Shown here: piece by piece, positions 3 to 27,400 of the stretch | Layout: every line of letters starts with the position of its first letter | Numbering within the stretch: the stretch's first letter is position 1 | Origin: Macrostomum hystrix | Taxonomy: Eukaryota > Animalia > Platyhelminthes | Length of the DNA stretch: 64,000 nt | Assembly (NCBI GenBank): GCA_950097015.1 | Contig: CATNEN010000002.1 | Span: 434,001 to 498,000 of the forward strand | Direction: 5' to 3' | The notes under the pieces: model-generated | The model's database searches: none | What the model was told of the DNA's origin: nothing | The model's input: the letters and a program-made list of their open reading frames with translations, nothing else | Made by a program: the position numbers and the translations under genes

Positions 3-449
3 GCGTTCTCGGCGTTGCCTGCGTACGCCGATCTGCGCCGCTGCATGGCCTGGATTCGTCAGCGCGAGGACCAGCTGAGACGCTCGCAGCAGCTGCCTGC
101 CGGCGCTGACCTCGCGGCCGTCAGCGACGTCGCCGAACTGCTGCGCCGATTGTGCGCCTCCGTCATCGATCAGCGAGTCCAGATTAACGCATGCGAAGCT
201 GCCAGAGCCAGCCTGGCTGCCGGCGAGGAGCGAGAGACCTTCGACGGGCTGCTGGGCGAGCTTGACTCCGCCTATCGCGCCCTCCTGCAGGCGGCCAACC
301 GTCGCCAGGCTGAGACTGAGGACCTGCTGGCCTTCATGGAGAGCGCGGAGGCTGAGGTGGCCTGGCTGGTTGAGAAGGAGGCCGAGCTGCTCGGGCACGA
401 CTGGGGCACCGCAAGTCTGGAGACAGACGATGTGGAAGTCTACTTTAAG
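3..449 (+). CDS. shot: Spectraplakin exon 1 in window (plakin-domain spectrin repeat; 5' end outside window)
   Basis: Open frame with [19 protein letters not shown]; donor AAG|gtgaga at 449/450, phase 0. Confidence 0.9.
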
Positions 450-3400: not shown

Positions 3401-6400
3401 CTGGAGTCCCAGCTCAGCGGTCTAGAATGGGAGATGAACTACCTGCGCCAGCGGCTGCAGCAGGAGCTCGGCGTCCTGCCAGAGTCGTTTCAACTGCTTG
3501 AGAGGCGGCGAGCCAGCGTCTGGGACGTGGCGCACGAACAAGTTCGACGCCTGCAATCGGCCAGAGATTTTCTAGCTCAATTGGAGGGCCTGGCATCAAG
3601 ACTGGCCCAGGCTGAGCAGCTGCTAACTGAGAGCCGAATCTTCCCGGTGCGAGAAGCTGAGCTGCACAGACACCTGACCAGTTTGCGGGTGAGAACACCT
3701 GGATATCGACAAAATGAATTATTCTATTAGTATGCAATTAAATATGCTGATAGACTTTATCCGCTTCGCACCCAACCCATTTCACTCCGCCTGTAGAACG
3801 TGCAGCAAATACTAAACGCCGCCCGAGCCGAACTGAACTCAGCAGAAGCCGCACCGCAGCTGAGCAAGCTGGTTCGACCCATCGGCGAAAAGTGGCGCCG
3901 GTTGAATGAAACCGCGGAGCAGAGACTCGCTCTCCTGGGCCACTGCTCCAGCCAGTTCGACAGCTACATGCGCCTGGCCAAGCAGTTCTCCGTCTGGCTC
4001 GCTGGATGTCATCGCCGTCTGCAGGCAGCCGCGCCAAATGATCCCGAAATTATCACGGAGGTCGGGAAATCAGCAGAGCAGGCGGGCGCTGATCTCGCCA
4101 GCCTCAATTCTACTGGCAACGAGCTGATCAGGGTGGCGCGAAACTATGATTTCTACTGCCAAAACGGCAGCGGCTCCAGCAGCGAAGGTGGGGCCGAGCA
4201 GCTCCAAGAAGAGCTTGCACGCCTGAACGGCGACTTTCAAAAACTAGTTGCGTCGCTGGAGCATCGCCAGAAGGTACTCTTGGCGAACAGGCAGCCTGAT
4301 TTAAGTCACGAAAGCGGTAACCTCGGTAGCTATGGAGACGCACACAGCGGCTACCAAGAGGTACCTAAACATGCCGTTTTAACTAACACACCTAGTCCAG
4401 CGTTTGGTGTGGCTAACCAGTTTGCTTCTGCAACAACTGTCAGAGACAGTCGCGACGGCTGGTCCGTTGCCGCTTTCTCTTCAGTCACCGAAGAGGCCGT
4501 ACAAGAGGCAGGCACAGCGCTGCTAGTTGGCAGCGACAGGGCGGTTCCTCTAACCCAGTTGCGCAGCCCGGTGCAGCTCACGGCGAGCACGACTGTGTCT
4601 CCTGTAGCCATGGTCACAGTGCACCCGCCCCCGGCTTTGCAGTCGCACAGATCAGGCGCGATCGATCGAAGTAAAATGGGTGGGGAAGAGACGATTAACT
4701 TCCCCAGAGCAGAGGAGGAGCTCCCGCTGAGCGCTCGCGGGTTTGAAAAGGCGCAGACAACGGCCGTTATAAGTGGAGGAAGTGAATCGATTGCCAGACC
4801 AGGGGAATTTGCTCCGCTGCCGGGACAGACTATTGTGAAACAGGAGCAGGCTAAAGCTGCGGCAATGGCGGCCGCAATGGCAGAGCAGCAACAGCAGCAG
4901 CAGCCGCAATCAATGCAACGAAAGCGACGATTAACTAGCGAAGAAGTGCCTGACGAAGAGACAGTTCGTAAGCAGCCACAGCAGCAGCAGCAGCAAGGCC
5001 AGCAACTGAAGGCTCTGCGTATTGATACTTCTCCTGAGGCAACAGCAGTGTCGACTACAGCGTCCAGGCCTGCTGCAACAGCTCCCACGCTAAATGAGCT
5101 GCTGACCCGCGGCCTGGTAGACGAGACATCAGGCTTACTGGTGCTCCCACTGCCAGGCGCGCCTTTCACTATAGCTGAAGCGTTGAATCGCGGCCTCATT
5201 GATCCTGTTCTATCGACGATTGTGGACCCCGACACTGGCGCCCAGGTACCTCTGGATCGGGCGATCGCCACAGGTCTCTTGAACCCAGACACCGGCAGTG
5301 TACGGTGTCGGAGCAGTGGACAAAATCTTACATTCGCAGACGCTATCCTGGAAGGCCTGGTGCCGGAAGAAACGCCAATGGCCACAGGTCACATGACTTT
5401 TGAAGAGGCCCTTAGCCGAGGATTTGTTGACTACAAGCGCAACATGCTGGAACTGCCGGGCCGTCCGGCCGTGCCGATCGATCGGGCAATCGCATCGGGC
5501 TGGATCGATCCGCCCCAGTCCGTCACCAGCGTTCGCAGCAAGGAGCGCCGCACTCCGACATCCCTGAACGAGGGCAGCTCCCGCTCGGTAATCGGCTCCA
5601 GACGAAACGCTGATACAGCGAGTGAAGGCAGCGAACTGACAGATGTAACACAGCTGCCAGGGGCTGGAGCAGCCTCTGGAGGACCGTTCTTGGACTCACC
5701 GGCCCCATCGTCGTCAATAGTAACATCCACCGCAGGATCGGAGCTGTCTGTTCTTGCCAGCACATTGCTCGCCCGTCGCACTGCGGTGCCAGCCGCATCC
5801 GCACCGCCTACAACAGATTCTGGGTCAAAGGCCAGCCAGTCTAGCCAGCCGCAGCAGCAGCAGCAGCAGCCTTCGAAACAGCAGTCAAGTGGAAAACAGT
5901 CTTCTAGCACTGACAGAAAGAATGGCGCCGATGCCAGAGAAGATCGCGACGACGGTAGGCCAGCGGGTGTGCAGCCGAGTGACATTGGTAGCTTTAGCAT
6001 GGTTGACAGTGGTCTGGAAAGAAACTGCGTGCTGGACATGCTGTGCCTGAAGCACGGCAGCACCAAAATTCCAGGCCGCGTTACTAGTCAGATGCTACTT
6101 AGCGGCGATGTGGATCTAGCTTCGGGAACTCTGAAGGATCCAGAAAGCCTGCAGCGCATCACTATTGTTGAGGCCATTCGAAAGCGGAGTGCCTACGCTA
6201 CTGTAGTGACTGTTGGCAAAGGAAAAATGTACGTGGAGCAGTACGATAGTCGGCATCACATGCACGAGATTCAGGGCGTCTACGACTCGTACAACCGTAC
6301 CAGAGTTTCTGTGTTTGAAGCTCTCGAGCGTGGCCTGATTGACCCGGTGCGGGCAACTTATCTGGACACAAAGACTGGCTACGTGTCTGTCCTGACCGAT

Positions 6401-9400
6401 GCCATGCGCGAGGGCCAGGTGCAAACCATACCACTGTCTCGCGCTCCCAGCAGTTTGACTCATCCGTTCGACAACTATCACGCTAGGACCATTGAGGAGG
6501 AGCTGACTCTTGAAATGCCTCACAAGCTGCCAAAAGATGTTCGCGACTCCGTTTCCGCCGAATCGAAGCAGCAGCCGGCGCGGAAGCAACCGCCGCAGCC
6601 GCAGGAGCAGCAGGAGCCGTTGGTTGCGGTGAGCACAGCGGCAACTTCGGTGCTGAATCAACCAGCTGCCGACCCAATGGACTCGTCAAGTCAGCCGCAG
6701 CGATTCCGACTGGGCCAGGGCTACGAGCTGACAGCCAATGGCCAGGTGAAAGATCCTAGCGGCGCTCTCATCTCCCTGGAGACGGCTGAGAAGCTCGGCA
6801 TCCTGACTGTGGCCGGCTCGGCCGCCGATCCAATGTCGCAGGTATGGCGCGCTGTGACGGCTGGCTGCAGCCTGATTCTCTGGCTCAGGCCATTGTTGTG
6901 GCCAGAGACAGGCTGATCGGAGACCCGAATAATAATAGTTAACTAATTGTATTGCTAAACCTTGCAGCTTGAATTGACATAACAATAGCTCTCTAAGTAA
7001 ACTGAAAACTCAGATTTTTTCAAGGTTTAGCAATGGGCATGAAGTGCTTGAGATTTGTAAGAATATATTAGATTTATGTCGCGTTACTAAGCAGCTCAGA
7101 TATTGGCAACATTGAAGGCATTATTAAAAATTTAATTATTTAATTTACTCTTTACTCTTGGTCGATGGGTTGCTATAACGGCACGTCTACTTTATTCTCG
7201 CAAAAGTCTCTTTTGCTTGTGTTGTATATGCATTATTCCTTTTTCCTATTTGGTGCGTGTCCAGTGTTATTCCACAGAGCTCTATATTTCTCATTGTCTC
7301 CGCCCAACTTGCAGCGCTAAATCCCATTCGCTACTCTCCACCCTCACTGGTTGCAGGCCTCTGACGCGGCTGTCTCCACACAGCCAACTTCGCACGCCTT
7401 TGGTGACGGTTTTTCTCAGCCTCCGCCTCTCCCCGCCTCTCCCACCCGCCCCGTTCCGCCCCATCATCCGATTGTCTCCGCCACTGCCGACCACCCTGGC
7501 ACCGACGACCAGTTGCATCTGCAGCAGCAAATCAGCTCGATGCGGATGCCGCGAGCTGGCGCTGATGTTCTCGGCCAAGCTTCGGGCACAGCGCCGCAAA
7601 ATATGTTCGGCGACAGGCGCCTCGGTAACCGCCATCAACGGCCGGACGAAGATTTCCCAATGACGGAAGAGGAGCAGTTGAAGCTGGAGCAGCAGTTCAA
7701 TGCGTTGCATGCACTGGCGGATGAGCTGGCTTTGGACGAGGATGAGGCAAGCCAGGGTGCCCCAAATCAGGAAGACTCGACCAGCATCGCAAGGCAACCA
7801 CTCGCGAGCAGTCTTCGAGCTCAATGGGCGTCTTCTGATCGACCGTCAGCTCTTCAAGTGGCCACTGAGGGCGCCTTTAACCCCAGCCTGCTCTGCTGCT
7901 ACCGCCCGGACTCGCTGGAACCCGTGTCCCTGGCTCGTGCTATTCGCGACGACTTTCTCAGCGGACAGGGCACTAAACTGCTAGTCAATTCGGCACCTGG
8001 AAGCGCCACAGAAATTAGTCTGCGTCAGGCGCTCGAATTGGGCATTGTAAATCGGAATGATCGAGATGAAGACCAGCTCACTGAACGACTGGCTAACGGT
8101 TCCCTTCGCGTCGCTTGCGCGCCCTACGCTGGCTGTCTGTACCTTCGACGGCTAGTGGAGGACAACTGGGATCCTGCGCGGCTGCTGTTCGCCGATCCGG
8201 CCGGACGTCTGGTGACGTTTCCGCAGGCCGTGGAGTCCGGCATTCTCTCCCCGGATCTCGTACTGGTTCGCGACCTCAGCTCCGGAGAGTCGCTGAGGCT
8301 GGCAACGGCGCTGCACCGTGAATTGGTGCATCCGGTGACCGGAGCTGTGCTGGACACGAACACCGGCTGCTCGGCTCCGTTGGAAGAGGCCGCTCGCATT
8401 GGAGTCATCACTGCTCCGCACGAGAAACAGCTGGCCAGATCCACTGGCGAACAGGTATGGCCCACACTTCTATTTTTCTAATCGAACAATACGGATTTGT
8501 GTTCTAGTCTGTTGCACCGCATTGGACTAAAAACAGGAAATGTCACAATTTAATTTTCAGGCCTACTATTACTACGTAGGTTGGAAGAACAATGAACCCT
8601 TAGAAAAAATGTATTCTAATCTGTATTCTGCCTGAACTATATTGATAAAAAGGTTAAATTCTTCGTTACTTAAGCCTACTACTATAACATACCCTCGATG
8701 AAAAACCGTGAATAAAATGATAAGATAATTTCGGAAATTTCCTAACTCAAAGAAGCACTCACTCTGATAAAACAACTACACTCAATTCTAAAGACTTGCA
8801 TGGCTTTTTAGGCTGAAAACTTTAGAAGACACTATGAGAATACTGATTAGATGCTATCGTCTAGTTTTAATGAAACACATTAGCGTTAAAAAATGCGCAC
8901 TTTATATGCATTAAAAAATTCTAAACTAGGCAAACAATTATTTGTTATTTTTGCACAGAATTTGTAAAAGCTACATAATTATATAAATGGCACCTCTCGT
9001 CCTATTATCGCGCTAACAAAGGCTAGAAAATATTTGATTTGCACGCTGAGTATAAATTTATTGTGTACAGATTTAACGATGTCAGTTTTGCTGGAAAAAA
9101 TATTTGTGAGTCAATTTTACCTATGTTATAATAGTGAACGTTTCGAAGGTATAAAATTTATGTTACCTTGAAAAATTGTTTGCCAATCGGCCCAGGTTCC
9201 CGATAGCAGCCCGCGCAGCAGCAAAAGCAGCAGCAGCAGCGGTGGCGGAGGCCCCAGTAGCTCTGAAGCGCGGCCGCCGCTGCCGCGCAGAGGCAGTGCA
9301 GAAATAGTTCAGACTGACCCGAACACACCGGGAACTTTTAGCCATACAGGGACAATCCCTTTAGGCTTCTCTGTCGGGATGTTCCCTAACTGCCTGGCTG

Positions 9401-12400
9401 TTCGCCTGGGTGAAAGAGGCGAGGTGACATTGTTTAACTTTAGTCGTTCTCAGTCGCCATCAATAGATCAAGACCCTCTGCTGGTTGGTCCCGGCAGCTA
9501 CCGTGCCGGTCTTGGCGCGGACTTTCAGCCAGTGCTGCTGTTCTTCGACAGTGACAACGGAGCGACGCTACATTTCGGAGACTGCCTTCAACGAGGCCTC
9601 TTCCACCTCATTGAGTCAACTGTTCTTGAAGAATTTTCTAGAGTCACTATCTTGAGCGAAGCGTTGAGCGACGGACTTGTGCATCCGCGCAGCGGAGACC
9701 TGATGAGTCACAAGCATCAGCATCGCGTACCCAATTTGGATTTTTCGCGAGCTCTGCGCGCCGGCAGACTAGTTTTGCGCCTGGCAGCTGAGCTCGCTGC
9801 GACCGTGCAGTCAGTCGACTCCCTGCCGACGCCCGTAGCTGACTCTCTGGCCGAAACTTTGAAACTCGAGTTGAGTCCTCTGGGCTTGTGGCACAGCTAC
9901 GCCGGTATCGAAGATCCGGCCTCCGGAGCTCGTCTGTCTCTCAGCGAAGCTGTTCGCCGAGGCCTCATCAGCCAGACAGAGGCTGACGCACTTTTGAAGC
10001 GCTTACTGCCAAGCTTTCGTGAACTGGCCGAATCCTACGATCCAGTGCGTCGGTTTCTTGTGAATCCAGCGAACGGACAGTTCATCAGTTTAGTGGAAGC
10101 TGTGCGACTCGGCCTACTCACAATAGACCAGCTGCACGAACTTCAGAGGTGCAGGTGCACCGAGTCGCAGTTCTTTTGCGACGATATTTTGGACCAGGAA
10201 ATCGGCTGGCAAGCTTCGGCTAGCGAACTGAACGGATTATCGGACTGGCGCGACTCTCGCACAGCGATTTCCAGCGCCAAGCAGGTCAGGAAGCGTGCTC
10301 AAATCCTTAGCGACAGTGAAAGCAACGCCGCAACTCACGGAGAGTTGACAGTCAGCGGCGACCGCCTAGGGACAGCTGTTTCCGAGCTGAGTCAGCCTGA
10401 GCAAACTCACCCATTGCCACCCCAGGCCAAGTTGGCAAAAGTGTCGTCGCTTGAGGACGCACTGAGTCAGCCAAGTCACGCTGGCACTACAACGAGCGAC
10501 TCGGCACTTTCACACCCGGCAGACAGAAGTAGCGATATCACTCGTGGTCATGAGAGTGGTGTGAAGCATGCTCAAGTGGCCCTAGTGGAGAGACAATCCG
10601 GTATTACTCGAGTGCTGTCTGAGACTGATTCACCCGTTAGCCCGTCATCCCCTACAGCAGAGCCAATGGATTATGAAAGCATAGCCAAAAATGCGGCATC
10701 TAAATTGACTAGAACCAGTCAGCAACCTATTAGGGAATCGGATCAATCAGAAAATGTGCCAGATGGAGGCATTATTCAGCCAACCCAGAAGCCGACCCAG
10801 AATTTTAATCAATTTCATAGAAAACAGAAGCAGGAATTGACCGAGCAGCAAATGACTGGAGCAAAACATTCTGACCAACAACTGGAAAAGGGCATGTCAG
10901 AATCCGGTCAGCAAGGATTCTTGTCAGGATCTGGTCAGCAACAAGATGAAGGTTTTTCAGGATTCATTGAGCAGCAAGATGGAAGCTTGCAAGAATCAGG
11001 TCAGCAACGAGACGTAAGCTTGCCAGAATATGGTCAGCAAAAATATGGAAGCTTGTCAGGATCTGGTCAGCAGCAAGACGGAAGCTCGCTAGGACCAGGT
11101 CAGCAGCAAGACGAAAGTTTGTCAGGATCCGGTCAGCAGCAAGACGGACACTTGCCAAAATTCGGTCAGCAAGACGCAATCTTGTCAGGATCAGGTCAGC
11201 AACAAGACGCAAGCTTGTCAGGATCTGGTGAGAAGCCAGACAGAACATTGCTAGGACCAGGTCAGCAGCAAGACGCCAGCTTGTCAGGATTCGGTCAGCA
11301 ACAAGACTCCAGCTTGTCAGGATCTTGTCAGCAACAAGACGCAAGCTTGTCAGGATCTGGTGAGAAGCCAGACGGAACATTGCTAGGATCAGGTCAGCAG
11401 CAAGACTCAAGCTTGCCAGGATCTGGTCGGCAGCCAGACGGAGCCTTGCTAGAACCAGATCAGCAAAAAGAATCAAGCTTGTCAGGTTTAGGTCAGCAGC
11501 AAGACGGAAGCTTGTCAGGATCCGGTCAGCAACGAGACGGTAGCTTGTCAGGATCCGGTCAGCAACAAGACGGAAGTTTGTCAAGTTCAGATCAGCAACA
11601 AGGACGCTTTTCAGGATCCGGTGAGCAACAAGACGAAAGCTTGTCAGGATCTTGTCAGCAGCAAGATGGACAATTGCCAAAATCCGGTCAGCAAGACGCA
11701 ATCTTGTCAGGATCAGGTCAGCAGCCAGACGGAACCTTGCTAGGACCAGGTCAGCAGCAAGACGCAATCTTGTCAGGATCCGGTCAGCAGCCAGACGCAA
11801 GCTTGTCAAGATCTGGTCAGCAGCATGACGTAAGCTTGTCAGGATCCGGTCAGCAACAAGACTCCAGCTTGTCAGTATCTGGTCAGCAGCCAGACGGAAC
11901 CTTGCTAGGATCCGGTCAGCAACAAGACGCAAGCTTGTCAGGATCTGGTCAGCAAAAAGAATCAAGCTTGTCAGGATCCGGTCAGCAACAAGACTCCAGC
12001 TTGTCAGGATCTGGTCAGCAGCCAGACGGAACCTTGCTAGGATCCGGTCAGCAACAAGACGAAAGCTTGTCAGGATCTGGTCAGCAAAAAGAATCAAGCT
12101 TGTCAGGATCAGGTCAGCAGCCAGACAGAACCTTGCTAGGACCAGGTCAGCAGCAAGACGCAATCTTGTCAGGATCCGGTCAGCAGCCAGACGCAAGCTT
12201 GTCAAGATCTGGTCAGCAGCATGACGTAAGCTTGTCAGGATCCGGTCAGCAACAAGACTCCAGCTTGTCAGGATCCGGTCAGCAGCCAGACGGAACCTTG
12301 CTAGGATCCGGTCAGCAACAAGACGCAAGCTTGTCAGGATCCGGTCAGCAAAAAGAGTCAAGCTTGTCAGGAACCGGTCAGCAACAAGACGCCAGCTTGT

Positions 12401-15400
12401 CAGGATCCGGTCAGCAACCAGACGCAAGCTTGTCAGAATCAGGTCAGCAACACGACTCCAGCTTGTCAGGATTTGGTCAGCAAAAAGACTCAAGCTTGTC
12501 AGGATCGGGTCAGCAGCAAGACGGAAGCTTGTCAGGATCTGGTCAGCGGCAAGGCGCAAGCTTGTCAGGATCTGGTCAGCAACAAGACGCCACCAGCTTG
12601 TCAGGATCCGGTCAGCAGCAAGACTCAAGCTTGTCAGGATCAGGTCAGCAGCAAGACGGAAGCTTGTCAGGATCTGGTCAGCGGCAAGGCGCAAGCTTGT
12701 CAGGATCCGTTCAGCGGCAAGAGGCAAGCTTGTCAGGATCTGGTCAGCGGCAAGAGGCAAGCTTGTCAGGATCCGGTCAGCGGCAAGAGGCAAGCTTGTC
12801 AGGATCCGGTCAGCGGCAAGAGGCAAGCTTGTCAGGATCCGGTCAGCGGCAAGGCGCAAGCTTGTCAGGATCTGGTCAGCAACAAGAGGCAAGCTTGTCA
12901 GGATCTGGTCAGCGGCAAGAGGCAAGCTTGTCAGGATCTGGTCAGCAACAAGACTCAAGCTTGTCAGGATCCGGTCACGGTGATCAGTTACTGGCCTCCG
13001 TGGATATTGATCAAGGCGTTACGTCACAAGACACTGAGCAAAAGCAGTTGCAAGAATTAGAAACAGCTGATGCTGTGAAGTCACAGCAGAACAAGTTCTC
13101 TGAACAGCAACGAGTGGCAATACCAAACAGAAGTCCTTCAGATTCTACAATTGCACTTGCTACAATGGAGCAGCCTTCGACTTGTCAAACAGACTTAAAA
13201 AAGTTACCTTCAGATGGCATTCCTAGTAGAGAACTGCAGAACGACAGCAAAATAACTATATCACAGCTGCAGCCTTCAACTGAGACAGCTGGAACACAAC
13301 AGCATTCAACTGACACAGCTGGAACAGAACAGACTTCAACTGACACAGCTGGAACACAACAGCATTCAACTGACACAGCTGGAACAGAACAGACTTCAAC
13401 TGACACAGCTGGAACAGAAGAGACTTCAACTGACACAGCTGGAACAGAACAGACTTCAACTGAAACAGCTGGAACAGAACAGACTTCAACTGACACAGCT
13501 GAAACACAGCAGCCTCCAACTGACACAGCTGGAACAGAACAGACTTCAACTGAAACAGCTGGAACAGAACAGACTTCAACTGACACAGCTGAAACACAGC
13601 AGCCTCCAACTGACACAGCTCTAACACAGCATCTTTCAACTGACACAGCTGGAACACAACAGCCTTCAACTGACACAGCTGAAACAGAACAGGCTTCAAC
13701 TGACACAGCTGGAACAGAACAGACTTCAACTGACACAGCTGGAACAGAACAGACTTCAATTTACACAGCTGGAACAGAACAGACTTCAACTGACACAGCT
13801 GGAACAGAACAGACTTCAACTGACACAGCTGGAACACAACAGCATTCAACTGACACAGCTGGAACAGAAGAGACTTCAACTGACACAGCTGGAACAGAAC
13901 AGACTTCAACTGAAACAGCTGGAACAGAACAGACTTCAACTGACACAGCTGAAACACAGCAGCCTCCAACTGACACAGCTCTAACACAGCAGCTTTCAAC
14001 TGACACAGCTGGAACACAACAGCCTTCAACTGACACAGCTGAAACAGAAAAGACTTTAACTGACACAGCTGGAACAGAACAGACTTCAACTGACACAGCT
14101 GGAACAGAACAGACTTCAATTTACACAGCGGGAACAGAACAGACTTCAACTGACACAGCTAGAACAAAAGAGACTTCAACTGACACAGCTGGAACACAGC
14201 AGCCTCCAACTGACACAGCTCTAACACAGCATCTTTCAACTGACACAGCTGGAACACAACAGCCTTCAACTGACACAGCTGAAACAGAACAGGCTTCAAC
14301 TGACACAGCTGGAACAGAACAGACTTCAACTGACACAGCTGGAACACAACAGCCTTCAACTGACACAGCTGGAACAGAAGAGACTTCAACTGACACAGCT
14401 GGAACAGAACAGACTTCAACTGAAACAGCTGGAACAGAACAGACTTCAACTGACACAGCTGAAACACAGCAGCCTCCAACTGACACAGCTCTAACACAGC
14501 ATCTTTCAACTGACACAGCTGGAACACAACAGCCTTCAACTGACACAGCTGAAACAGAACAGGCTTCAACTGACACAGCTGGAACAGAACAGACTTCAAC
14601 TGACACAGCTGGAACAGAACAGACTTCAATTTACACAGCTGGAACAGAACAGACTTCAACTGACACAGCTGGAACAGAACAGACTTCAACTGACACAGCT
14701 GGAACACAACAGCATTCAACTGACACAGCTGGAACAGAAGAGACTTCAACTGACACAGCTGGAACAGAACAGACTTCAACTGAAACAGCTGGAACAGAAC
14801 AGACTTCAACTGACACAGCTGAAACACAGCAGCCTCCAACTGACACAGCTGAAACAGAACAGGCTTCAACTGACACAGCTGGAACAGAACAGACTTCAAC
14901 TGACACAGCTGGAACAGAACAGACTTCAATTTACACAGCGGGAACAGAACAGACTTCAACTGACACAGCTGGAACACAACAGCATTTAACTGACACAGCT
15001 GGAACAGAACAGACTTCAACTGACACAGCTGGAACACAACAGCCTTCAACTGACACAGCTGGAACAGAAGAGACTTCAACTGACACAGCTGGAACACAAC
15101 AGCCTTCAACTGACACAGCTGGAACACAGCAGTCTTCCACTGACACAGCTGGAACAGAACAGGCTTCAACTGACACAGCTGGAACAGAACAGACTTCAAC
15201 TGACACAGCTGAAACACAGCAGCCTCCAACTGACACAGCTCTAACACAACAGCAGCAGCCTTCAACTGACACAGCTGGAACACAACAGCGTTCAACTGAC
15301 ACAGCTGGAACAGAAGAGACTTCAACTGACACAGCTAGAACACAACAACATTCAACTGACACAGCTGGAACAGAACAGACTTCAACTGACACAGCTGGAA

Positions 15401-18400
15401 CACAACAGCAGCAGCCTTCAACTGACACAGCTAGAACACAACAGCAGCAGCCTGCAACTGACACAGCTGGAACACAACAGCAGCAGCCTTCAACTGACAC
15501 AGCTGGAACACAGCAGCCTTCAACTGACACAGCTAGAACACAACAGCAGCAGCCTTCAACTGACACAGCTAGAACACAACAGCAGCAGCCTTCAACTGAC
15601 ACAGCTGGAACACAGCAGCCTGCAACTGACACAGCTAGAACACAACAGCAGCAGCCTTCAACTGACACAGCTGGATCACAGCAGCCTTCAACTGACACAG
15701 CTAGAACACAACAGCAGCAGCCTTCAACTGACACAGCTGGAACACAGCAGACTTCAACTGACACAGCTCTAACACAGCAGCAGCCTGCAACTGACACAGC
15801 TGGAACACAGCAGACTTCAACTGACACAGCTGGAACACAGCAGACTTCAACTGACATAGCTGGAACAGAAAAGACTTTAACTGACACAGCTGGAACAGAA
15901 AAGACTTTAACTGACATAGCTGGAACAGAGCAGACTTCAACTGACACAGCTGGAACAGAAAAGACTTTAACTGACACAGCTGGAACACAGCAGCATTCAA
16001 CTGACACAGCTGGAACACTGCAGCAGTCTTCAACTGACACAGCTGGAACAGAGCAGACTTCAACTGACACAGCTGGAACACAGCAGCGGCCTGCAACTGA
16101 CCCAGCTGGAACACAGCAGCAGCCTGCAACTGACACAGCTGGAACACAGCAGCAGCCTGCAACTGACACAGCTGGAACACAGCAGCAGCCTGCAACTGAC
16201 ACAGCTGGAACACAGCAGCAGCCTGCAACTGACACAGCTGGAACACAGCAGCAGCCTGCAACTGACATAGCTGAAACACAGCAGCCTTCAACTGACACAG
16301 CTGGAACACAGCAGCCTTCAACTGACACTGCTGGAACAGAACAGACTTTAACTGACACAGCTGGAACAGAACAGACTTCAACTGACACAGCTCTAACACA
16401 ACAGCAGCCTTCAACTGACCCAGCTGGAACACAGCAGCGGCCTGCAACTGGCACAGCTGGAACAGAACAGCATTCAACTGGCACAGCTGGAACAGAACAG
16501 ACTTCAACTGACACAGCTGGTACACAGCAGCCTTCAACTCACACAGCTGGAACACAGCAGCCTTCAACTCACACAGCTGGAACACAGCAGCCTTCAACTG
16601 ACACAACTGGAACCGAACAGACTTCAACTGACACAGCTGGAACAGAACAGCATTCAACTGACACACCTGGAACACAGCAGCAGTCTTCAACTGACACAGC
16701 TGGAACACAGCAGCAGCCTGCAACTGACCCAGCTGCAACACAGCAGCGGCCTGCAACTGACCCAGCTGGAACACAGCAGCGGCCTGCAACTGACCCAGCT
16801 GGAACACAGCAGCGGCCTGCAACTGACCCAGCTGGAACACAGCAGCAGCCTGCAACTGACACAGCTGGAACACAGCAGCAGCCTGCAACTGACACAGCTG
16901 GAACACAGCAGCGGCCTGCAACTGACACAGCTGGAACACAGCAGCGGCCTGCAACTGACCCAGCTGGAACACAGCAGCGGCCTGCAACTGACACAGCTGG
17001 AACACAGCAGCGGCCTGCAACTGACCCAACTGGAACACAGCAGCAGCCTGCAACTGACCCAGCTGCAACACAGCAGCGGCCTGCAACTGACCCAGCTGGA
17101 ACACAGCAGCGGCCTGCAACTGACACAGCTGGAACACAGCAGCGGCCTGCAACTGACACAGCTGGAACACAGCAGCCTTCAACTGACACAGCTGGAACAC
17201 AGCAGCCTTCAACTGACACAGCTGGAACACAGCAGCGGCCTGCAACTGACACAGCTGGAACACAGCAGCGGCCTTCAACTGACACTGCTGGAACAGAACA
17301 GACTTTAACTGACACAGCTGGAACAGAACAGACTTCAACTGACACAGCTGGAACACAGCAGCAGCTTTCAACTGACACAGCTGAAACACAGCAGCCTGCA
17401 ACTGACACAGCTGGAACACAGCAGCAGCCTGGTGACGATGTCATGGAGACTAGCCAGCCATCAGTTTTGAAGCCGAAAGGACCAAGCGAAGGCATAATCG
17501 CTTCCATTGAAAACCTGTTAGCTGGTTCCAATTCAGGGCAGTCCCAGTGGGTTTTGGGTCAGTCTGAGCTTACGGCAGAGGCGGCGGCTGCGCTTCTAGC
17601 GATTAGTCTCGGCCAGGTTAGTACAGGTGGTTCTAGGATTGCTGTCACGCTGCTTGGCTTCATTAGTGAGAATAACTTCAGAAACAGAACTGGAACTAAT
17701 ATCGGAGATTTATTTAACAGTCGCGCAGTTAAAATTTAATATACCTTGCTTTCCCCCATAACGGCTAAAAAGGATTTTCAGTTCCCTGCAGAATTGTCAC
17801 ACTTTTTGCGGTGGATCGCACCAGGTGTGAATAATAACGACTGTTGACTTCAGTAGCTCGTGTGTTTCAGCGTTCAGCTTTGCAAACTAAAATCCAGTAA
17901 ATTGCGCACCCATTCGCTCCTGACTCAAAAATTTATAAATTTTAGGTTTTGAATCATGCTTTTTACCTTTGCGTCTAATGCTTATTTAATTTTGAAAACT
18001 GCGCTATATTTTCACCTATTTCGCCTATAATAATAGCATAACAAGTCCGTTCAACCCACCCAACTGCTTGGCAGCCCGCACAGATGCTCACTTCCACAGC
18101 TTCTAACCAGCAAAATCAGCTACAAAGCGCTGATGGTTCCTCCCTACTTAGCCCACAACCCACAGCGCAGGCTAGCTCGGTTGGTCTGTCGGGTTCGCCA
18201 ATCAAAGACTTCGACTCTGAGGTTCGCGATTTCGACGATGTCGTCGATGAAGAAATGCGCGCGGTTCAGGCCGTGAAGCTTCATGCTCCGATGCCGCTTC
18301 GAGACTCCAGAAAGCCAGGTCCTCTTGATATCGTCGATCCCAGTGCGGTGACTGAAGAAAACTTAATTAATCCTCAAGAATCTTCGACGCTTAGCGCCCA

Positions 18401-21400
18401 TCGGCAGCGAGGTACCAGTTCTTCGAGGAATGATACCCCGTCTGTCAAGGTTCAAGATCCCATGTTGCATCGTCACCCTTCGCCTCAAGCAGATTCTAGC
18501 GAATGCGCTGAGTCCGGCTCTCAGGATTTTGAAGAAGTGGTGAACCCTGTGATGTCCTCCAGAGTTGACTCTCTGACGGTTAGTCGAGACCCCCTTGAGA
18601 TGACGAGTACCAAAGAAACTGCCAAGCCTAGCTCTCAGAGTGTCGATGAACAAGTCGATCAAGTCCCAATAGATTTGCCTAAATATAGTTCAAGTGAAGA
18701 ATTGGACCCTAGCTTTGTGACTAGTTTACCGCCGGTTGATCAAAGTTCCCAGGTCGTTGATGACGTCATTAAGCCTTCGGCAAACTCTACGTCTCAGGTT
18801 CCAGTATTCAATCATCATCCTAAGCTACAAGTGGATTCTTCCGAACAGCTCAATCCCGGCTCTCAATCTATTTCGCGAGCTACTCCGATTGAGCACAATC
18901 AGCTAGCTGGCGAATCGGATAGAGGTGATGCTTCTGAATCAAGCGATGCTGATGAGCCTGTATTTGGTCGTACTGCATCTTCTCTGGTTAATGCTCCTGT
19001 TACAGGAGAGCATAATCGGACTAGCCAAGAAGTCGCTTCTCGCGATCTAGTTAACGAAATTACCCAATCTACTGATGATGTGATGACAGGAAGTGTATCT
19101 GCCAGCACCGAAGAACCTATTGTGCGGTATCAGCTGGCACCGAATGCTCAAACAGATATCTGGAATGAGCAAAATCCTCGGCTGCCATCTGAGGATGAAT
19201 TCATGGACCTTTCTGCCAGCTCAAACGCTTCCAGTTTGTCATTTGAAGACATAATTCACGGCCGGCAGGTGGAAATCGATGTTTCGATGATGATCGAGCT
19301 AGAAGAGGAACAAGCTGCGCCTTGCACCGAAACGGTAGAAGCCGTTGAGCACCTGGTCCAGGAAGCACCAGTCCAGCTAGCCGCTGCCGTTGATTATCCA
19401 GTGTACGCACGAGCGAAGATTGCTGAGCGGCTGGTATTCGAGTGCACAGATGAAGACGGGCCCATTTTGAAGTACAGATCCGATCGCTCGGTTTCTGAAA
19501 CTGAACAGGTAGCCAATATCGATCGCTCTGAGTCCATACTGAGAGCTGACTCTGTAAAGAATCAAATGTCACCATCAAAATCGATTGCGATGCCGCAGCC
19601 TGTCACCGTGGAAACTCCAGTCGAGGATCAAATCATTGCAAATGATCAAGCAGGGCCACACCTGCTTCAACCCGAAAACATTTGCTCGCCGAGCCCACTG
19701 ACGCCTGCAACAAAACGCAAACTACCAGAGCAACTCGAGTTTGAGCCAAGCGATGGCAGTTCTTATAAATCAAAGAGATCAGTGTCCGAAACCGAAATGG
19801 TGGCAAATATCGACCGGGTTGAATCTGTGCTACATCCACATCAGAACAAGCGACATGCTATTTTCGCCAATGAAGAACCTAGTGTTGCGACCATCCCCGA
19901 TTCCGACAAAGTGGCACAACTCGATGATGACGAGACTTTGATTCAACCAGGTAGAGGAGCAGCAACTCAAGCTTCACCAGAGTATTCTGTAGGAACAGGT
20001 GGTGGAGTTGTAAAAGTGGTTGATACTGAGTTTCACGTTCTTGCCGTACAACTGAGCAGAGATCCAGCTGGTGATAAAAACAAGGACATGAAAAATGGTG
20101 GAATCGAACGCACCGAGCAATTGCTAGATAAAAGTCATTTATCACAAGATTTGACAATCCGTGACGATTCTGAAGTAAAGCATCGGGATAAAGAGAATCC
20201 TCCACAAGTCGAGGATCATTCCCAATCTGAATCCTGCCAAGACGTTGCAGAGACAACACGCGACTTGGTGCGCAGCAGAAGCGATGAGAATAGGTCTAGC
20301 AACTATCGTTATGCTGAAGCCGACCGCATCGGAAAAGTGCTCGAAAGCCAGGATGTTGCAGCGACAATGCCGCAGATTAAGGATGCCAAATCTTGCGAAG
20401 GGCAAGACGATGGCGAAGTCGAGGAACAAACCCTTGGCGTCGAAACCCTTGGACACGAGGCAGCTACACCTGGCCCTGCAAGTTACGCAGATCAGTTATC
20501 AACCGCTCCACAGCTTGACTCGCAATTTGAGCAGAATGACTCAGCAAACGAAGAAGAGCTTACATCGACTCAAGATGAACCTGGGTACACCGCTGTACCC
20601 AGGGATGACAAAAGCGACGCTCAAGCAGCAAAGACTACCACAGAAGCTAAGGAGTATAAAGATGATACTATTTCACTGGAATTTAATTATCAAGCCACGC
20701 CTAATGAATCTATTCCAAAAAGAACCACAAAAAAATTGGAAGAAAACTTAGCATCTGAATCTGCTGACTCAACAACAAGCAACGATGAAGACAGCGACAC
20801 GAAGTTCGAAACAGTCGTTTCTGAGGCTGTTTCTGAGGAAAATCCAACGTCAAAAAGTCAGGACTCCGAAACGAAACTCGAAAGTGTCGTCCATTCTGAT
20901 TTCACAACTAGCCCTGGTTCGCCGGTCGACGATTCCAAAGAAGTCAAATCCAGTGAGCATGAAGTTGCGGAGATCAGACAGGATGTCGTGGAGAGCGAGA
21001 CTTTAGCCCTAGCTGTTCAACAACTGCGCATGCCTAGTCAAGAAGAAGACTATGATACCGATGTGAGTTCAGTATCGGATGTGGAAGAAGTAACTGAATT
21101 CATTTCTGTAGTTCTTAAGAATCCGGACGAGTACTTTCACCAAGAAGCTCACGAAGCGGCACTAAGTATTGAGCTACCCAATCCAGTCTACTGGAAGACT
21201 TCTTTCGATGACAATGACCAACTGGGTCAAGAACGAATATCATCAGACAGTGAGTCTTCTCATGAAGAACCACAAGCAGATCTTGCAAACGAGGATCTTA
21301 TGGAACATTCTTCAAGCGGGTCTGGTGACGCGCAGCAGGATTTGCATAAGTCCCACCTTGGACCAAATCAAGTACCGATTAAAAACTTACGATCAACAGC

Positions 21401-24400
21401 ATCGCAGTTTCTTACTGACCTGATCGATAAAAGCCTGGTTAGCAATGATTCAGACACTTCATGTAATGACCAGAAGCAAATTGTGGAAACAGAAACTCAT
21501 GTGCTCGCTGTGAAATTGTTTACCAGTGAGACGCCAGTGTCACAAACTGAAAATGTAAACTTGGACCTAAATAATGAAACTGAGAGTAAATTGGCGTTAC
21601 TGAAGCCGATCGCAAGTGTTCAAGGGCAGACGAAAGAGACTGAAGAAATCGAGGATTGTGTGGGGCAGCTGAGTCCAACTCAGTCCAGCAGTCCAGGCAA
21701 TGCTAGTCACAGATCTGAAGCGAGCATCGGTAACGAGCAACTTTTTAATGAAGAAACAAACGAGGAGATCATAAATGTAGAGCTAAACACCGAGAAAAAG
21801 CAAAAGCTAGATAATGATGTATTGCTACAGACTTCGCCTCAGAAGCAGCCAGTTTCTGCTGCACAATGGACTGGCAAGCCCGAAGAATGGAATTCTGATG
21901 AGTCAGCTGAGGTAGAGTTTTCTGACAACCTTATAGCAACTGACAGCCAAGAAGCAGTGTCCGACTCGAATAGTCAAACTGATGATCATCCTACAGGTCT
22001 GATTGTACATAGAGAGAGTCAAATTCTTTCAGTTCAGTTTCGTGAAGACGAGGACGACAATGAGTACGAGTCGGATTCTGTCTCCTGCCCTAGTGACGCT
22101 ACGGTTATTCTCAAGTCAGTTGAACCAAAAACAGAGGAAGAAAATACTAAGTTACCGCTGCCGAGTAGCAAGCCCGACCAAAGCCAGCAAGAGTGCAAGC
22201 AAACTATTTTGGAAGACAGAAAGCCTAATGATTTAGGACTTCTTGAATTCGACGGTGAAGGAAGCCTTGTTAGTCAACTTCTAGAAACCCGAGATTACCA
22301 ACAGTCACCTTTGCAGGCAGGTTTGCGTTCGACTGCCTCGCAGTTCAACAGCTCTAGGGAAGCCAATGATGAACTTGGGCATGAAAGTAACATTGGTACG
22401 GAAGCTGAAGTGACACCGTCAATGAGCCCTGATAATTCCACGATAGATACAGCTGGAGATCTTGCGAAGTCCTCAGAATCAAAACAGGACTTTGTTTCTG
22501 ACACACTGAAGCCTGACGCACCGTCTGAAAATTCTGAGACCCCATTGGTACTCTCTGATAGTTCGAAAACTCGCAAAAATAATGACCATGAAACGATTTC
22601 GCTTTCTATCGAGCTCGATGAGCCAGAAGATGTCGAGCATCAATATTCGTCCCGGCCACAAAAGCAACCTACCGAAGCTATAACCAGGGCCACATATGAA
22701 GATTGCAAAGGTACTGAAACAATCACTATTTCAATGGAACTGGATGAGCCAAATGAGTTCGACGAGGGTACTCAGGTACGAGCTAAAGATCGCGATTCGT
22801 CAGTGCCACTCGGAGAAAGCGTTGCACAGACTAGACTTTCGTACAAATCAATCTTCCAGTCTGGTGAAACAAAAGTTGTTGACTCAGAGTTTCACCTGCT
22901 CGCTGTGCAGCTGCGCAAGGACCAAGGCGAAAATAAGGATGAGCATTGTGAAGAAATGGCTGCTCAAGAGCATCAACGCAGCTTTCACGAAAGTCTGCTC
23001 GAGAAACCGAATCTGTTGGATGCATCCGGCAATCACGAGTCATGCCCTCCAGCTGTTACTTATGTAGCCGTACCAGACCTGAAATCTCTTACAAATGGAT
23101 TCCAAACACTGAGCATTGCCTTCGAGGAAGAAAGTAGACAGATAGGCTTCAGGGACGAAATATTACAGGAAGAAGGCTCTTCCAAGGCGAATGCGGAAGA
23201 AAGTGAATTCGAATTCCCGAGTGATCAGGCAGATAAGACGATCAGACAGGATGACCTGCAATCCCTCAGCATCTCCCTGGAGCCTCCATTTGATGAAGAG
23301 GTTACTGAGGCTAGCTTGCTAGATGAGTTCAGAAGGCCGGTGCAGAAAGTGAAGCATGAGTATTCGGTAGATGATGAATCTGCAGAGGATTCTGAGAATG
23401 ACGAAAGGCTTAAAGGGCATCGAAACAATGAAAGTGAAATCAGTTCGGACCATGAGAACATGCACGAGTCTGAAATTGATGAAGAGGAACTCAAAGCCGA
23501 CACTGAGAACATGGTGCTTGCGGTCACATTGCAAGTGCCTATTCAGGAAGCTGTTAGCACTGACGAAAATATCATGCAACCTGAACAGGAATCCAGGGAA
23601 GTTTCAAACGTACCAAAAGAAGCTTCTTGTCTTGAGGTTACCATGCCATTTGACGATGAAATTCCCGCAAGTAGCCTGAGAGATCCAGAGCGAACAATTG
23701 TTCAGGCAGGTCCGGTTGATGACTTTGGAAGTAAGCTAGAAGATGGTACTCTTTCAGCAGATGCTGGACATGGTTGTGCTTCCCATCTGCCAAAAGACAA
23801 TGAAGACAGTTTCGACAATGATCGTTTGGGCTTTGACTTTACCAATAAAAGCAGGAATCGGCCCGATTTGCGAAAAGGTTCTTTGAATCAGTCGGAGAGC
23901 GACTTCGAAGTTCTCGGAGAAGATGAGACTGAATCGATTGGCCGAAGGGTATCTGATGCATTCGATTTGGACACAACTGCACTAAATTCAATGTCCACAG
24001 CCACTGATTCACACGCAGGTGTTTCGCCTGTTTCACTCAGGCAATATGAGAACAGCTCACAAGATGCTGAATTTGGACTGGAATCAAACGTCGACATTGA
24101 GAGGAGCTTCAGTTCACCCGCTGATTCAAAGCTTGATGGAGGAAGCTTTGACATGGAGCCGTCTCTGCACATTGACAGTCGAGAAGAAGCTCAAACAGCC
24201 CAGTCTACTTTTGATCCCGCCATTCAATTACCTGCAGAGGCGAGCGATAACTTTGAAAAGCTATTAGCAACTGAATCGCGAATCGCCTGTCATGACTTGG
24301 CTCCTCAGGATGACAGTGAAAACCTGATTTCACCATTAGGTGTTGATAAGCTTATCTCTAGGCCAGAGGATGATGTTGAATTAAGCCAGGGAGTCCAGAA

Positions 24401-27400
24401 AAAAGAATTAATCACGAAGATAGTCGAATCGGAGACTCGAGTGCTCGCTGTTTATCTCAGACTAGAAGCCGACATCCAAACGGCGGGTGTTGGTCCGAAG
24501 CCAGAACTGTCACAGCTAACAGAGGAGAAGATTCATGATGTTTCCGAGTCAGTGACTCCGTTGCGGTTGGCGCTGACTCAAGAAGCAGCGAAATTGGTCC
24601 ATTCTAGCTGCGATCCGGCTGAAGCCTTGCGAGTCATACCAGAAGAGGAGCTTTCTTTGGCCAGCCAAGGAGAGTCGGCCACATTATCTCCTTTATCGCC
24701 AGATGCGGAAGAATGCATGCAGGGAAAGGATTCCAATCCAGAAACTGTCAGCGATATTGAAAATGAAGATTCAATCGGCAACTTCACGCCGCGCAGTGAC
24801 GACCTTTCAATGTCGTTTCCCTTGCCAAAGAAGTCAGCCAATATGCCTCAGCAAAGACGATCGAATGCAGATCAGAGTCTATCGTCTCCCCAGTTTGATG
24901 ATTCTTCTCTTATGTCTCTGGGATCAATGTCCATGGACATTGTGTACACATCAGATTATCCTGAGCCTGAGCTCAAGCTTAGAACTGATGGCCTGTCTCC
25001 TATTCTCGATGACAGAATCTCTTACGACGAAAGCAGCCTGGCTAGTCCATGTCGTGAAAATACGCTGGTTGTGGTCGACGGCAAACCTTTAACCTTCAGA
25101 GAGGCTATTGAAACTGGAGCTATTGATCCAAACAGTATCACGCTGTCATTGGACACACCTATCAAACGGAGAATCACTCTGCAAGAAGCAATCGACGACC
25201 TGCTAGTTGATCCAAACTCAGGAGTGCTTCATGTGCCTCACGGCCCAGCCTACCCGCTGTCGATGGCTGCTCAGCTTGGTTACCTGCGTGGAGTCGACCC
25301 TGCAGACCTGGTCGCCTCAGCAACCCGCGCCTCACTCGAAAACGTCAGCAGCAATGACCATCTAGTCAGCCGACCCGAAGCACCTTCGTCCACCAGGACT
25401 TCAGTCGCCGTTGAAGAACCACTCAGCATCGATATTGAGTGCCTGAATCAACTCGCGGACCCTGAGTCACTCACACCTGAGGTGACCGACCGAGCTAGCA
25501 ACCTGTCCCCTCCCATGATCCCATCCCATCGTCCAAACCTTCACCATAACGACCTGCTGGTTCTCGCTGAAGCGAGCAGCGAAAACCAAAACAACGCTGA
25601 CAGCGACAGCATCGACAAAGAATCTGTGTCGCCGCAGTCTGAAGACACAGTGGTATGCATTTTTCGTAGCTTTAAAGCAAGAGCGAGCCAGTTGTTTATG
25701 CAGTTTTCTTTTAAATCCTACGTGTGCTTTGATTGTTGTATTGGCGAATCTATGCCAATTTTTGTTGTTTAGCTCTCTTTTTTGCAGCTCTGATTCCGAC
25801 ACTATCGTAGTAGTTTTCTTCCTCAGTTTAATTTTCTTGCAGCACAATACCATTTCGCTTGCTCAATTTCCTATTGGTTTCGGCTGTTTGTTGTGTGGGT
25901 ATCTGAACTACCGACAACTGAGTTGCCAATTCTGAGCATTTAGATAGCACTTTTAGATTGTTTTAATGAGAGTTTCTGAATTAATAGCTTCTTGATTATT
26001 GAAATTTTAGTTAGAGCAATAGGTAAAATGAGGGAAATATATGAATTACTTAGTTAAAAATCCTCAATAGTAATTGACGATTTGTAAATAAATAGTAAAT
26101 TATTCATTAACTGTGTAACATGACTCACCGATTCGCATTATCATTCTGATTCTTGGTCTAGTCCGTGATCATCTGGCGAGTGGACAATCTGAAAGAAGTA
26201 CGTGATCCAGAGATATAGTCAGACTGTGAAACCTGTTGGTTGTTGTTTCCTTTAAATTTTATAGCTATCAGGTTAGTTGAAAGCCTAGGCCTTGGTTTGT
26301 GGTGTCTGTTGTCGCTGAGTTTACAATTTCTTGTTGTCCTAGATTTTCTGTATCTTTGCGGCGCGATGGTTGCATTCCTATTATACGAGCTATTATAGCA
26401 AAAAATGGCTGCAGAAAATTTGCGCTTTAAATGCTTCATGTTTGACTTTTTTATTGGCTCGAGCTTATTTCTATCGATTTTTGCCTTTTAGCTTTAGAAA
26501 GCTACTAATATGAGCGTCCATACCGGTTAATTTCATGTCTGGCAGATTTTAAGCATAATTTAATAAACCAATCATTACAATCGACCTCCTAGATTGACGC
26601 CAAGAAGATGGCCGAAGACCTGCTGAAAGATCTGGAAAAGGAGCTGCAATCGCTCGCAAGCATTGAGGAGTGGCTCCTGACGCAAGGACCCGCTAACCTG
26701 GACGAGCAAAATGACATGAAGCTACTAGAGGGACACCAGGTAATGCCCCTGCGATTCAATCCCGACAAGATTTATCTTATTGTTTCTTAAAATTCGATAA
26801 AAAATGTAAGTTTTTATCTCCGACTAACATTAAACATAACAGGACATCAACAACGAACTCCTGGCGCGTCAGTCGCCACTGCTCACTCTGTATTATCAGA
26901 CTGAAAATCTGGTGCAAAAGTGTCCGGAGAGTCTGACGACCGACCAGAAGGAGCTGCTGTCCGGCCAGACCACCACTTCCCGCAGCAAACTGGAGCAGCT
27001 GAGGCGAGAGGCAGACTCGCGAATTCGCCAGCTCACGTCCGTGCAGGACTCACTGGAGCACTTCAACGACCGGCTGCAGACTGCTCAGGTGAGTTATTTC
27101 AAGCGAATTTATCCTGATTTTGCTGCTTTATGTATCGATAAGTACAATACACCTGTACTTTTATTACACCCGAACAGACCTGGCAGGATTGTACTTATGT
27201 ATCGACAAGTACAATACACCTGTACTTTTATTACACCCGAACAGACCTGGCAGGATGGAGTCGAGAGACGTCTAAACGAAATCGGCAAAGCATCACCGAA
27301 CAAGGCTGCAGCAACCGATCCGGCTGAGCTGCAAACTCTCATCAGCGAGCTCAAGGCGTGCGAAGGCGAGCTGAGCGCTCATCAGGGTGACTTAAAGGCC

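Follow-up and report, generated by a model that had tools for sequence, protein, structure and literature searches.

Animal cells link actin, microtubules and junctions mainly through spectraplakins. What the internal plakin-repeat region of these proteins does is still unclear, even in flies and mammals. In Shot-PH, one or more very large exons encode this region, which is inserted after the plakin domain and before the spectrin rod; its plectin repeats are divergent, gapped and not arranged in canonical 4.5-repeat domains, and it yields ‘gigantic’ isoforms (Roper & Brown 2003, PMC2173965; bioRxiv 10.1101/122010). Mammalian MACF1b and dystonin-b (BPAG1b) have alternatively included inserts with roughly 20 and 9–11 repeats, respectively, grouped in plakin repeat domains and free of long polyanionic or tandem low-complexity segments (bioRxiv 10.1101/122010). 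Here we describe a 64,000-nucleotide (nt) stretch of the flatworm Macrostomum hystrix (GenBank assembly GCA_950097015.1, contig CATNEN010000002.1, positions 434,001 to 498,000 of the forward strand; ‘the window’), in which a spectraplakin gene has four very large exons, numbered 5 to 8, between its plakin domain and its rod. This insert, real and partly supported by transcripts, takes the internal plakin-repeat region known from other spectraplakins to an extreme and does not make a new kind of protein. It shows how far the region can be remodelled.

The correspondence to the inserts of Shot, MACF1b and dystonin-b, which the first-pass annotation of this DNA had proposed, holds in position and in the presence of plectin repeats in exons 5–8, detected by Pfam or by an in-house profile. 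Whereas Shot has about 33–40 repeats in roughly 3,000 amino acids (aa) encoded by one exon, the M. hystrix insert spreads about 14 clear units over four exons and 6,711 aa. Unlike Shot, it also includes a pair of tandem peptide arrays (about 2,070 aa together) and an acidic orphan segment of 2,523 aa; an isoform with all exons would be some 25–30% longer than Shot (8,846 aa). With MACF1b and dystonin-b it shares the position in the protein and plakin repeats of uncertain partner, and alternative inclusion, which occurs in those genes, would here be permitted by exon phase. The orthologue in Macrostomum lignano (PAA81789.1, PAA91820.1) is alike in its head, exons 5 and 6, an acidic 2,290-aa homologue of exon 8, the junction of exon 8 with the rod and several short motifs, but differs in that its transcript model has no equivalent of exon 7 and has an array of its own (12-aa unit, about 434 aa) inside exon 6.

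Four large in-phase exons of a spectraplakin gene

Our best explanation, which we regard as probable, is that all four exons code for protein in a single-copy spectraplakin gene and together form its internal plakin-repeat region. Searched one exon at a time, the window proteins have their best relatives in M. lignano (37–88% identity, depending on the domain), and the gene shows a complete spectraplakin architecture on the + strand, with the CH domain, plakin-domain spectrin repeats, plectin repeats, rod, EF-hands and GAS2 domain in order. The CH domain (PF00307) matches at C2:432732-432854, 1.2 kilobases (kb) before the window; the CH and plakin-domain residues of M. lignano align to the 20 kb preceding the window, and the CH region of PAA81789.1 (hereafter P0005) aligns to the upstream loci L002 and L004 with 54–85% identity. 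Inside the window, the plakin domain is marked by Spectrin and Spectrin_3 Pfam matches at 15-458 and 1765-2481 and by Spectrin_SYNE1 at the start of exon 5, and the rod, with exons from 26593 onwards, by Pfam Spectrin matches between 26.9 and 41 kb (E values as low as 1.3e-42). The parts of the gene are as follows (window coordinates).

3..3685, + strand: plakin-domain exons preceding the insert (at about 3-449, 1813-2478, 2905-3195 and 3272 to about 3685), from Pfam and from 73–85% identity to P0005 residues 558 to about 1150
3797..6841, + strand: exon 5, 1,015 codons; final part of the last plakin-domain spectrin repeat, linkers rich in Q, S and A, plectin-type clusters at 5147-5542 and 6290-6376
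7357..8454, + strand: exon 6, 366 codons; four plectin-type units at 7906-8364; 50–74% identity to P0005
9196..17616, + strand: exon 7, 2,807 codons; 575-codon unique N-terminus, two plectin repeats (9916-10155), two tandem arrays, 64-codon unique tail
18084..25652, + strand: exon 8, 2,523 codons; acidic and Ser-rich, without a Pfam domain
26593-26739 and 26840 to about 27628, + strand: first rod exons, with 86–88% and 58–63% identity in tblastn of P0005 and of PAA91820.1 (hereafter P0001)
26912..43406, + strand: spectrin-repeat rod, EF-hands and GAS2 (Pfam)
41646-41993 and 42972-43150, + strand: EF-hands (Pfam)
about 43195-43400, within 42972-43406, + strand: GAS2 domain (Pfam, E value 1.6e-31)

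Exon order and flanking domains agree with the placement of the four exons between plakin domain and rod that the first-pass annotation had given, as do their lengths of 3,045, 1,098, 8,421 and 7,569 nt, with AG/GT borders at the coordinates it had named. The exons coincide with long + strand open reading frames (ORFs) at 3800-6916, 7351-8481, 9379-17739 and 18084-25772, and the introns that follow them measure 515, 741, 467 and 940 nt. All four lengths are divisible by three and all four exons are of phase 0-0, so each could be included or omitted independently, as had been claimed. Together they comprise 6,711 codons, of which the first 160 or so belong to the last plakin-domain spectrin repeat (Spectrin_SYNE1 at exon 5 aa 3-156), hence the earlier estimate of an insert of about 6,550 aa.

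The sequence shows gene membership and coding character for all four. No stop interrupts exon 8 or the roughly 740 codons of exon 7 outside the arrays, and the N-terminal part of exon 7 has a guanine-plus-cytosine (GC) content by codon position of 0.61/0.49/0.54, like exons 5 and 6 and the rod, whereas the four introns are flat and AT-rich (0.31–0.44). Exon 8 is present once in the genome (42 contigs, 220 megabases (Mb) searched).

Transcript evidence comes from M. lignano, whose GenBank annotation is a filtered, genome-guided transcript assembly from RNA sequencing with genes named MligNNNNNN.gN (PMC5730564); this naming presumably corresponds to the BOX15_Mlig locus tags. P0005 (5,543 aa, ‘CH domain-containing’), found through the cluster of an exon-8 match, follows the window in the order CH, plakin domain, exon 5 (71% identity), exon 6 (50–74%), exon-8 homologue and rod (88% over 26593-26739, 63% over 26840-27628), and joins the exon-6 homologue straight to the exon-8 homologue. 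The junction from 25652 to 26593 is as predicted by the first-pass annotation: the same border between exon 8 and rod occurs in P0005 and P0001, and its residues (V, then I-D-A) agree on both sides. Agreement with the M. lignano models is likewise residue for residue at the border of exons 4 and 5 (donor near 3686, acceptor at 3797), at the end of exon 6 and in the start region of exon 8. These models are 3′-partial, covering the head, exons 5, 6 and 8 and the first rod exons; because they join the homologues of exons 5, 6 and 8 to head and rod, those homologues are transcribed within spectraplakin mRNA, and the expressed linker almost certainly includes exon 8. Of the earlier expectation that transcripts would connect exons 7 and 8 to the flanking exons, the part concerning exon 8 is thus borne out in the congener, and the part concerning exon 7, which has no equivalent there, is not.

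Plectin-type repeats and the acidic segment of exon 8

Plectin-type repeats are present in all four exons, which identifies these as the gene’s internal plakin-repeat region. Pfam PF00681 (cut-off 20.5 bits) scores 66.4 bits in exon 5 (E value 1.9e-18), 35.9 bits in exon 7 (E value 6.5e-9) and, weakly, 16.1 bits in exon 6. A pattern scan together with a profile built from the units of exons 5–7 only, with no exon-8 sequence in it, finds strong units in exons 5, 6 and 7 (six, four and two, respectively), and in exon 8 it recovers a repeat pair with an E value of 1.3e-6, compared to at least 0.56 in 20 shuffles; the homologous M. lignano pair reaches 6.5e-10. An exhaustive HMMER search of 1.84 billion representative proteins with the last 1,200 residues of exon 8 gave four matches, namely the M. 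lignano orthologue (E value 1.3e-136) and three plectin-repeat proteins that match only this pair (1e-9 to 1e-4), making it the only part of exon 8 that matches proteins from outside Macrostomum. In an AlphaFold2 model of exon 8 aa 2225-2430 (206 residues), which is half-confident, aa 2325-2414 or thereabouts are predicted as three hairpin-plus-helix units (predicted local distance difference test (pLDDT) 66–84), the secondary-structure pattern of plakin repeats. Among solved structures searched by sequence, the exon 7 N-terminus has weak matches to envoplakin and desmoplakin, exon 5 has none and the exon 8 C-terminus nothing meaningful.

Altogether, some 14 clear units and a few weak ones take up less than 10% of the 6,711 residues. 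The insert thus lies between plakin domain and rod on large exons, like the regions of Shot-PH, MACF1b and dystonin-b, but is not, as a region of that type would be, made up mostly of repeats (about 20–40 units). Instead, plectin repeats stand at both of its ends, with long non-repeat stretches between.

A second plakin-type gene lies elsewhere in the genome (C39:9406532-9413588, − strand, with a CH match at C39:9421182-9421613). In it, at least 40 plectin-repeat matches with near-identical scores follow one another at a regular 150/300-nt spacing. This suggests an array of homogenised repeats, in strong contrast to the sparse ones of the window’s gene.

The acidic region of about 2,500 aa noted by the first-pass annotation is exon 8, whose 2,523 aa have a net charge of −304 (D+E 20.1%, K+R 8.0%, Ser 13.1%, P 6.3%). 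Its 2,290-aa M. lignano homologue shares only 31% global identity with it but nearly the same composition (D+E 20.8%, with basic and Ser content nearly equal), and identity rises in islands to as much as 84%, with aa 2201-2400 at 62–84%. Four features stand out.

20025-24459 (exon 8 aa 648-2125), + strand: six copies of a short motif, 174–488 aa apart
exon 8 aa 1505 and 1547, + strand: two I-S-h-S-h-E-L-D-E-P motifs, conserved in M. lignano
24756..25058 (exon 8 aa about 2225-2325), + strand: conserved block, 62–82% identity to M. lignano in 50-residue windows, AlphaFold2 pLDDT below 50
25080..25235 (exon 8 aa 2333-2384), + strand: plectin-type repeat pair (profile E value 1.3e-6), inside the stretch predicted by AlphaFold2 to be folded (aa about 2325-2414)

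The six-copy motif, [ST]-E-x-x-[LIVM]-L-[AS]-V-x-[LF], compares to an expectation of 0.0035 copies in shuffles and is kept in M. lignano. In a self-blastp of exon 8, the flanks of the six copies show no similarity beyond the motif itself, which leaves the idea of exon 8 as an old, decayed array without support. The block just before the plectin pair is conserved yet predicted to be disordered, which suggests a candidate conserved docking segment; an SxIP motif within it was ruled out by inspection.

The acidic part of exon 8 has no relatives outside Macrostomum among the 1.84 billion representative proteins, returned nothing from Pfam or from the sequence search of the Protein Data Bank (PDB), and gave no usable match in the ESM Atlas (1,800-aa query). 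The approximately 6,000 acidic, Ser/Thr/Gln-rich residues between the plectin clusters are probably disordered, as composition and modelling would have it.

Exon 7, its tandem arrays and isoform size

Both tandem arrays that the first-pass annotation had placed in the insert were recovered by Tandem Repeats Finder, within exon 7.

10920..12977, + strand: array 1, 33-nt/11-aa unit, 62.5 copies, about 686 aa, 79% matches
13270..17425, + strand: array 2, 30-nt/10-aa unit, consensus D-T-A-G-T-Q/E-Q-P/T-S-T, 134 copies, about 1,385 aa, 88% matches

Together they encode about 2,070 aa and keep the frame intact over 6.2 kb, in an exon rich in T (17.5%), Q (15.5%) and S (12.7%) with a net charge of −246. 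Array 2 includes 33- and 36-nt unit variants and irregular higher-order duplications, with marker variants recurring every 80–250 aa. Of 51 units compared in array 1, 41 are distinct in DNA sequence, and change at third positions is not in excess; array 2 has 25 distinct unit sequences among those sampled, with variation greatest at the first codon position; the mean entropy by codon position is 0.38/0.54/0.49 in array 1 and 0.45/0.23/0.16 in array 2. Since unit differences are not concentrated at third codon positions and the marker variants are irregular, the arrays are young and labile, and their units appear, from the pattern of codon variation, to be under no protein-level constraint beyond frame and composition. 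LC8-type TQT motifs were considered for array 2 and rejected, as the unit reads T-E-Q-T or T-Q-Q-P and not T-Q-T.

The M. lignano array differs from these. It occupies P0005 residues 2335-2769 (12-residue unit, about 36 copies, about 434 aa), inside the exon 6 homologue, at a site that corresponds to window 7776-7804, where M. hystrix has nine codons, and it is absent from the M. hystrix genome. Between the congeners, the arrays vary in unit and position and in whether they occur at all; they thus have independent origins at separate sites within the region, and they look like tolerated expansion rather than tuned length.

Stretches rich in S, T, Q and D that resemble array 2 in composition occur at more than 100 other places in the genome, many of them in long open frames (for example C11:4642592-4643722, C38:23549669-23550727 and C32:1937069-1939948); low-complexity peptide arrays in ORFs look like a habit of this genome.

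The proposal of a ‘titin-like, length-tunable spacer’ is not supported by these observations, given arrays that differ between congeners in sequence and position and units without codon-level constraint. The likeness to titin PEVK and other entropic springs would be one of concept only, in that a cytoskeletal giant has a long low-complexity, probably unfolded segment whose length in-phase exons could vary. Unlike the Pro/Glu/Val/Lys segment of titin, with its many small exons, the M. hystrix insert has four huge exons and is acidic and Ser/Thr/Gln-rich (exon 8 as given above, with D+E at 20.1%, K+R at 8.0% and P at 6.3%; exon 7 T/Q/S-rich), and because its composition is not PEVK-like, ‘titin-like’ can serve as a functional analogy only.

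The size of the protein turns on exon 7. From the N-terminus to the end of exon 5 there are about 2,190 aa (M. lignano numbering), exons 6–8 add 5,696 aa, and rod and C-terminus contribute between about 2,900 aa (the eight longest ORFs) and 4,500 aa (all + strand ORFs of at least 60 aa). Within these ORF bounds, an isoform with all exons would have about 10,800–12,400 aa and one without exon 7 about 8,000–9,600 aa, whereas the published maximum for Shot, the one protein with which ‘largest spectraplakin’ was compared, is 8,846 aa (PMC2173965). A record size would thus depend on the inclusion of exon 7 in the mRNA, which its sequence features would allow; the figure of more than 11,000 aa is therefore arithmetic and not observation.

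Several further points weigh against reading the four exons as one expressed, largely disordered plakin-repeat region. The splice junctions of exons 5, 6 and 8 are known from transcripts of the congener only, and those transcripts were assembled from short reads, in which intron retention is possible, though the frame is open throughout. No transcript-derived protein of the same species turned up in a word search that used exon 8 aa 1–300, and one with the whole of exon 7 matched no database protein within the length range of the search. No orthologue of exon 7 is present in the M. lignano transcript P0005, where blastp finds only weak paralogous plectin-repeat matches, so that exon 7 may be mostly skipped, or species-specific. 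Disorder is deduced from composition and from one AlphaFold2 run on 206 residues; Foldseek against the PDB with that model gave no significant match, with plakin repeat domains among the weak ones only. The array copy numbers come from one assembly.

Exon 7 could, alternatively, be a rarely used or non-functional species-specific cassette, with a giant isoform of about 8,000–9,000 aa that runs from exon 6 to exon 8, in the size class of Shot-PH, and with arrays that are minisatellite expansion in an effective intron. We consider this possible, if somewhat unlikely. It agrees with the direct joining of the exon-6 and exon-8 homologues in M. lignano without an orthologue of the unique part of exon 7, with the absence of protein-level constraint on the array units and with the empty word search, but it leaves aside that the non-repeat codons of exon 7 are stop-free with coding-type GC periodicity, that its plectin repeats exceed the Pfam cut-off, that the length variants of the arrays all keep frame and that its splice sites are canonical and of phase 0. 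Moreover, the GenBank annotation of M. lignano dropped transcripts overlapping annotated repeats (PMC5730564), and for that reason the absence of exon 7 there is weak evidence.

Improbable to a greater degree is that exons 7 and/or 8 are separate transcription units, produced by an internal promoter, by spliced-leader trans-splicing onto an acceptor or by termination after donor read-through, and yielding plakin-repeat-only or rod-less isoforms like VAB-10A or BPAG1e. Read-through past the donors of exons 7 and 8 would meet in-frame stops after 40 and 39 codons, respectively, the intron that follows exon 8 has an AATAAA or ATTAAA signal 435 nt from its start, 38.8% of M. lignano genes are trans-spliced (PMC5730564), and short dystonin isoforms ending in plakin repeats are known (bioRxiv 10.1101/122010). 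However, the M. lignano transcripts run from the head through exons 5, 6 and 8 and from the exon-8 homologue into the rod, and the intron behind exon 7 is free of polyadenylation hexamers. Such units can coexist with the internal plakin-repeat region that we favour. That the array lengths, and with them part of the size claim, are an assembly artefact of expanded or collapsed near-identical 30- and 33-nt units is very unlikely, for although the units are 79–88% alike with irregular higher-order duplications, they have diverged enough for long reads to place them (25 and 41 distinct among those sampled), the frame is intact over the 6.2 kb of array, and an assembly of 42 contigs for 220 Mb suggests long-read data.

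A possible charged tether and its genomic setting

If the four exons form one internal plakin-repeat region, this region would have been inflated in the macrostomid lineage, with small plectin clusters surviving in exons 5 and 6, at the start of exon 7 and at the end of exon 8. Exon 8 would be an older, lineage-restricted acidic segment of which length, charge and a few short motifs are kept while the rest drifts, a pattern that could be the signature of a flexible polyanionic linker with docking motifs. The exon 7 arrays would be young products of replication slippage or unequal crossover, tolerated because the region needs only its frame and an unstructured state. Isoforms with these exons would then place a long, charged, flexible tether between the actin-binding and plakin head and the microtubule-binding EF-GAS2 tail, with a few plakin-repeat clusters as possible filament or junction contacts, and splicing, since all exons are of phase 0-0, could include or omit each of them and so vary isoform length. 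We infer the tether function from these features. Macrostomum has cytoplasmic intermediate filaments, such as macif1 (PMC4016567). Flies are not known to have them.

A bolder version, which we offer tentatively and think rather doubtful, is that macrostomids turned the plakin-repeat region into a new kind of rod, polyanionic, disordered and 2,300–5,000 residues long, in which conserved beta-strand-like motifs (the six E-x-x-V-L-A-V-x-L and the I-S-h-S-h-E-L-D-E-P motifs) dock a partner or zip molecules together. If true, a linker that includes exon 7 would exceed 11,000 aa, and the locus would point to lineage-wide disordered acidic rods in cytolinkers. Unless the motifs bind something, the insert is an annotation-level curiosity and not a new mechanism.

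With the repeats cut to a few clusters, length, negative charge and a few short motifs would be what selection keeps, while arrays come and go between congeners. The locus may therefore offer a natural test of how the region acts, through its repeats or as a long charged tether, and it does so in a genus of flatworms in which transgenesis and RNA interference are usable (PMC5730564).

Three other features lie near or around the gene. A SURF2-like ORF on the − strand (L002:1793-2485, that is, C2:415793-416485; E value 1.2e-12) lies upstream of the first exon with a match to the N-terminus of the M. lignano spectraplakin (L002:6971-7144). In the 5′ intron of the spectraplakin gene, L004:1480-4509 (C2:425480-428509) is open in several frames on both strands, with ORFs of up to 759 aa and no Pfam match, and is probably another low-complexity or repeat tract. 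Downstream, at window 53453-56836 (+ strand), a 1,127-aa open pol-type ORF with protease, reverse transcriptase, RNase H and integrase belongs to a Ty3/gypsy-like retrotransposon and is flanked by two Mab-21/cGAS-like ORFs, at 48763-50160 and 60258-61433.

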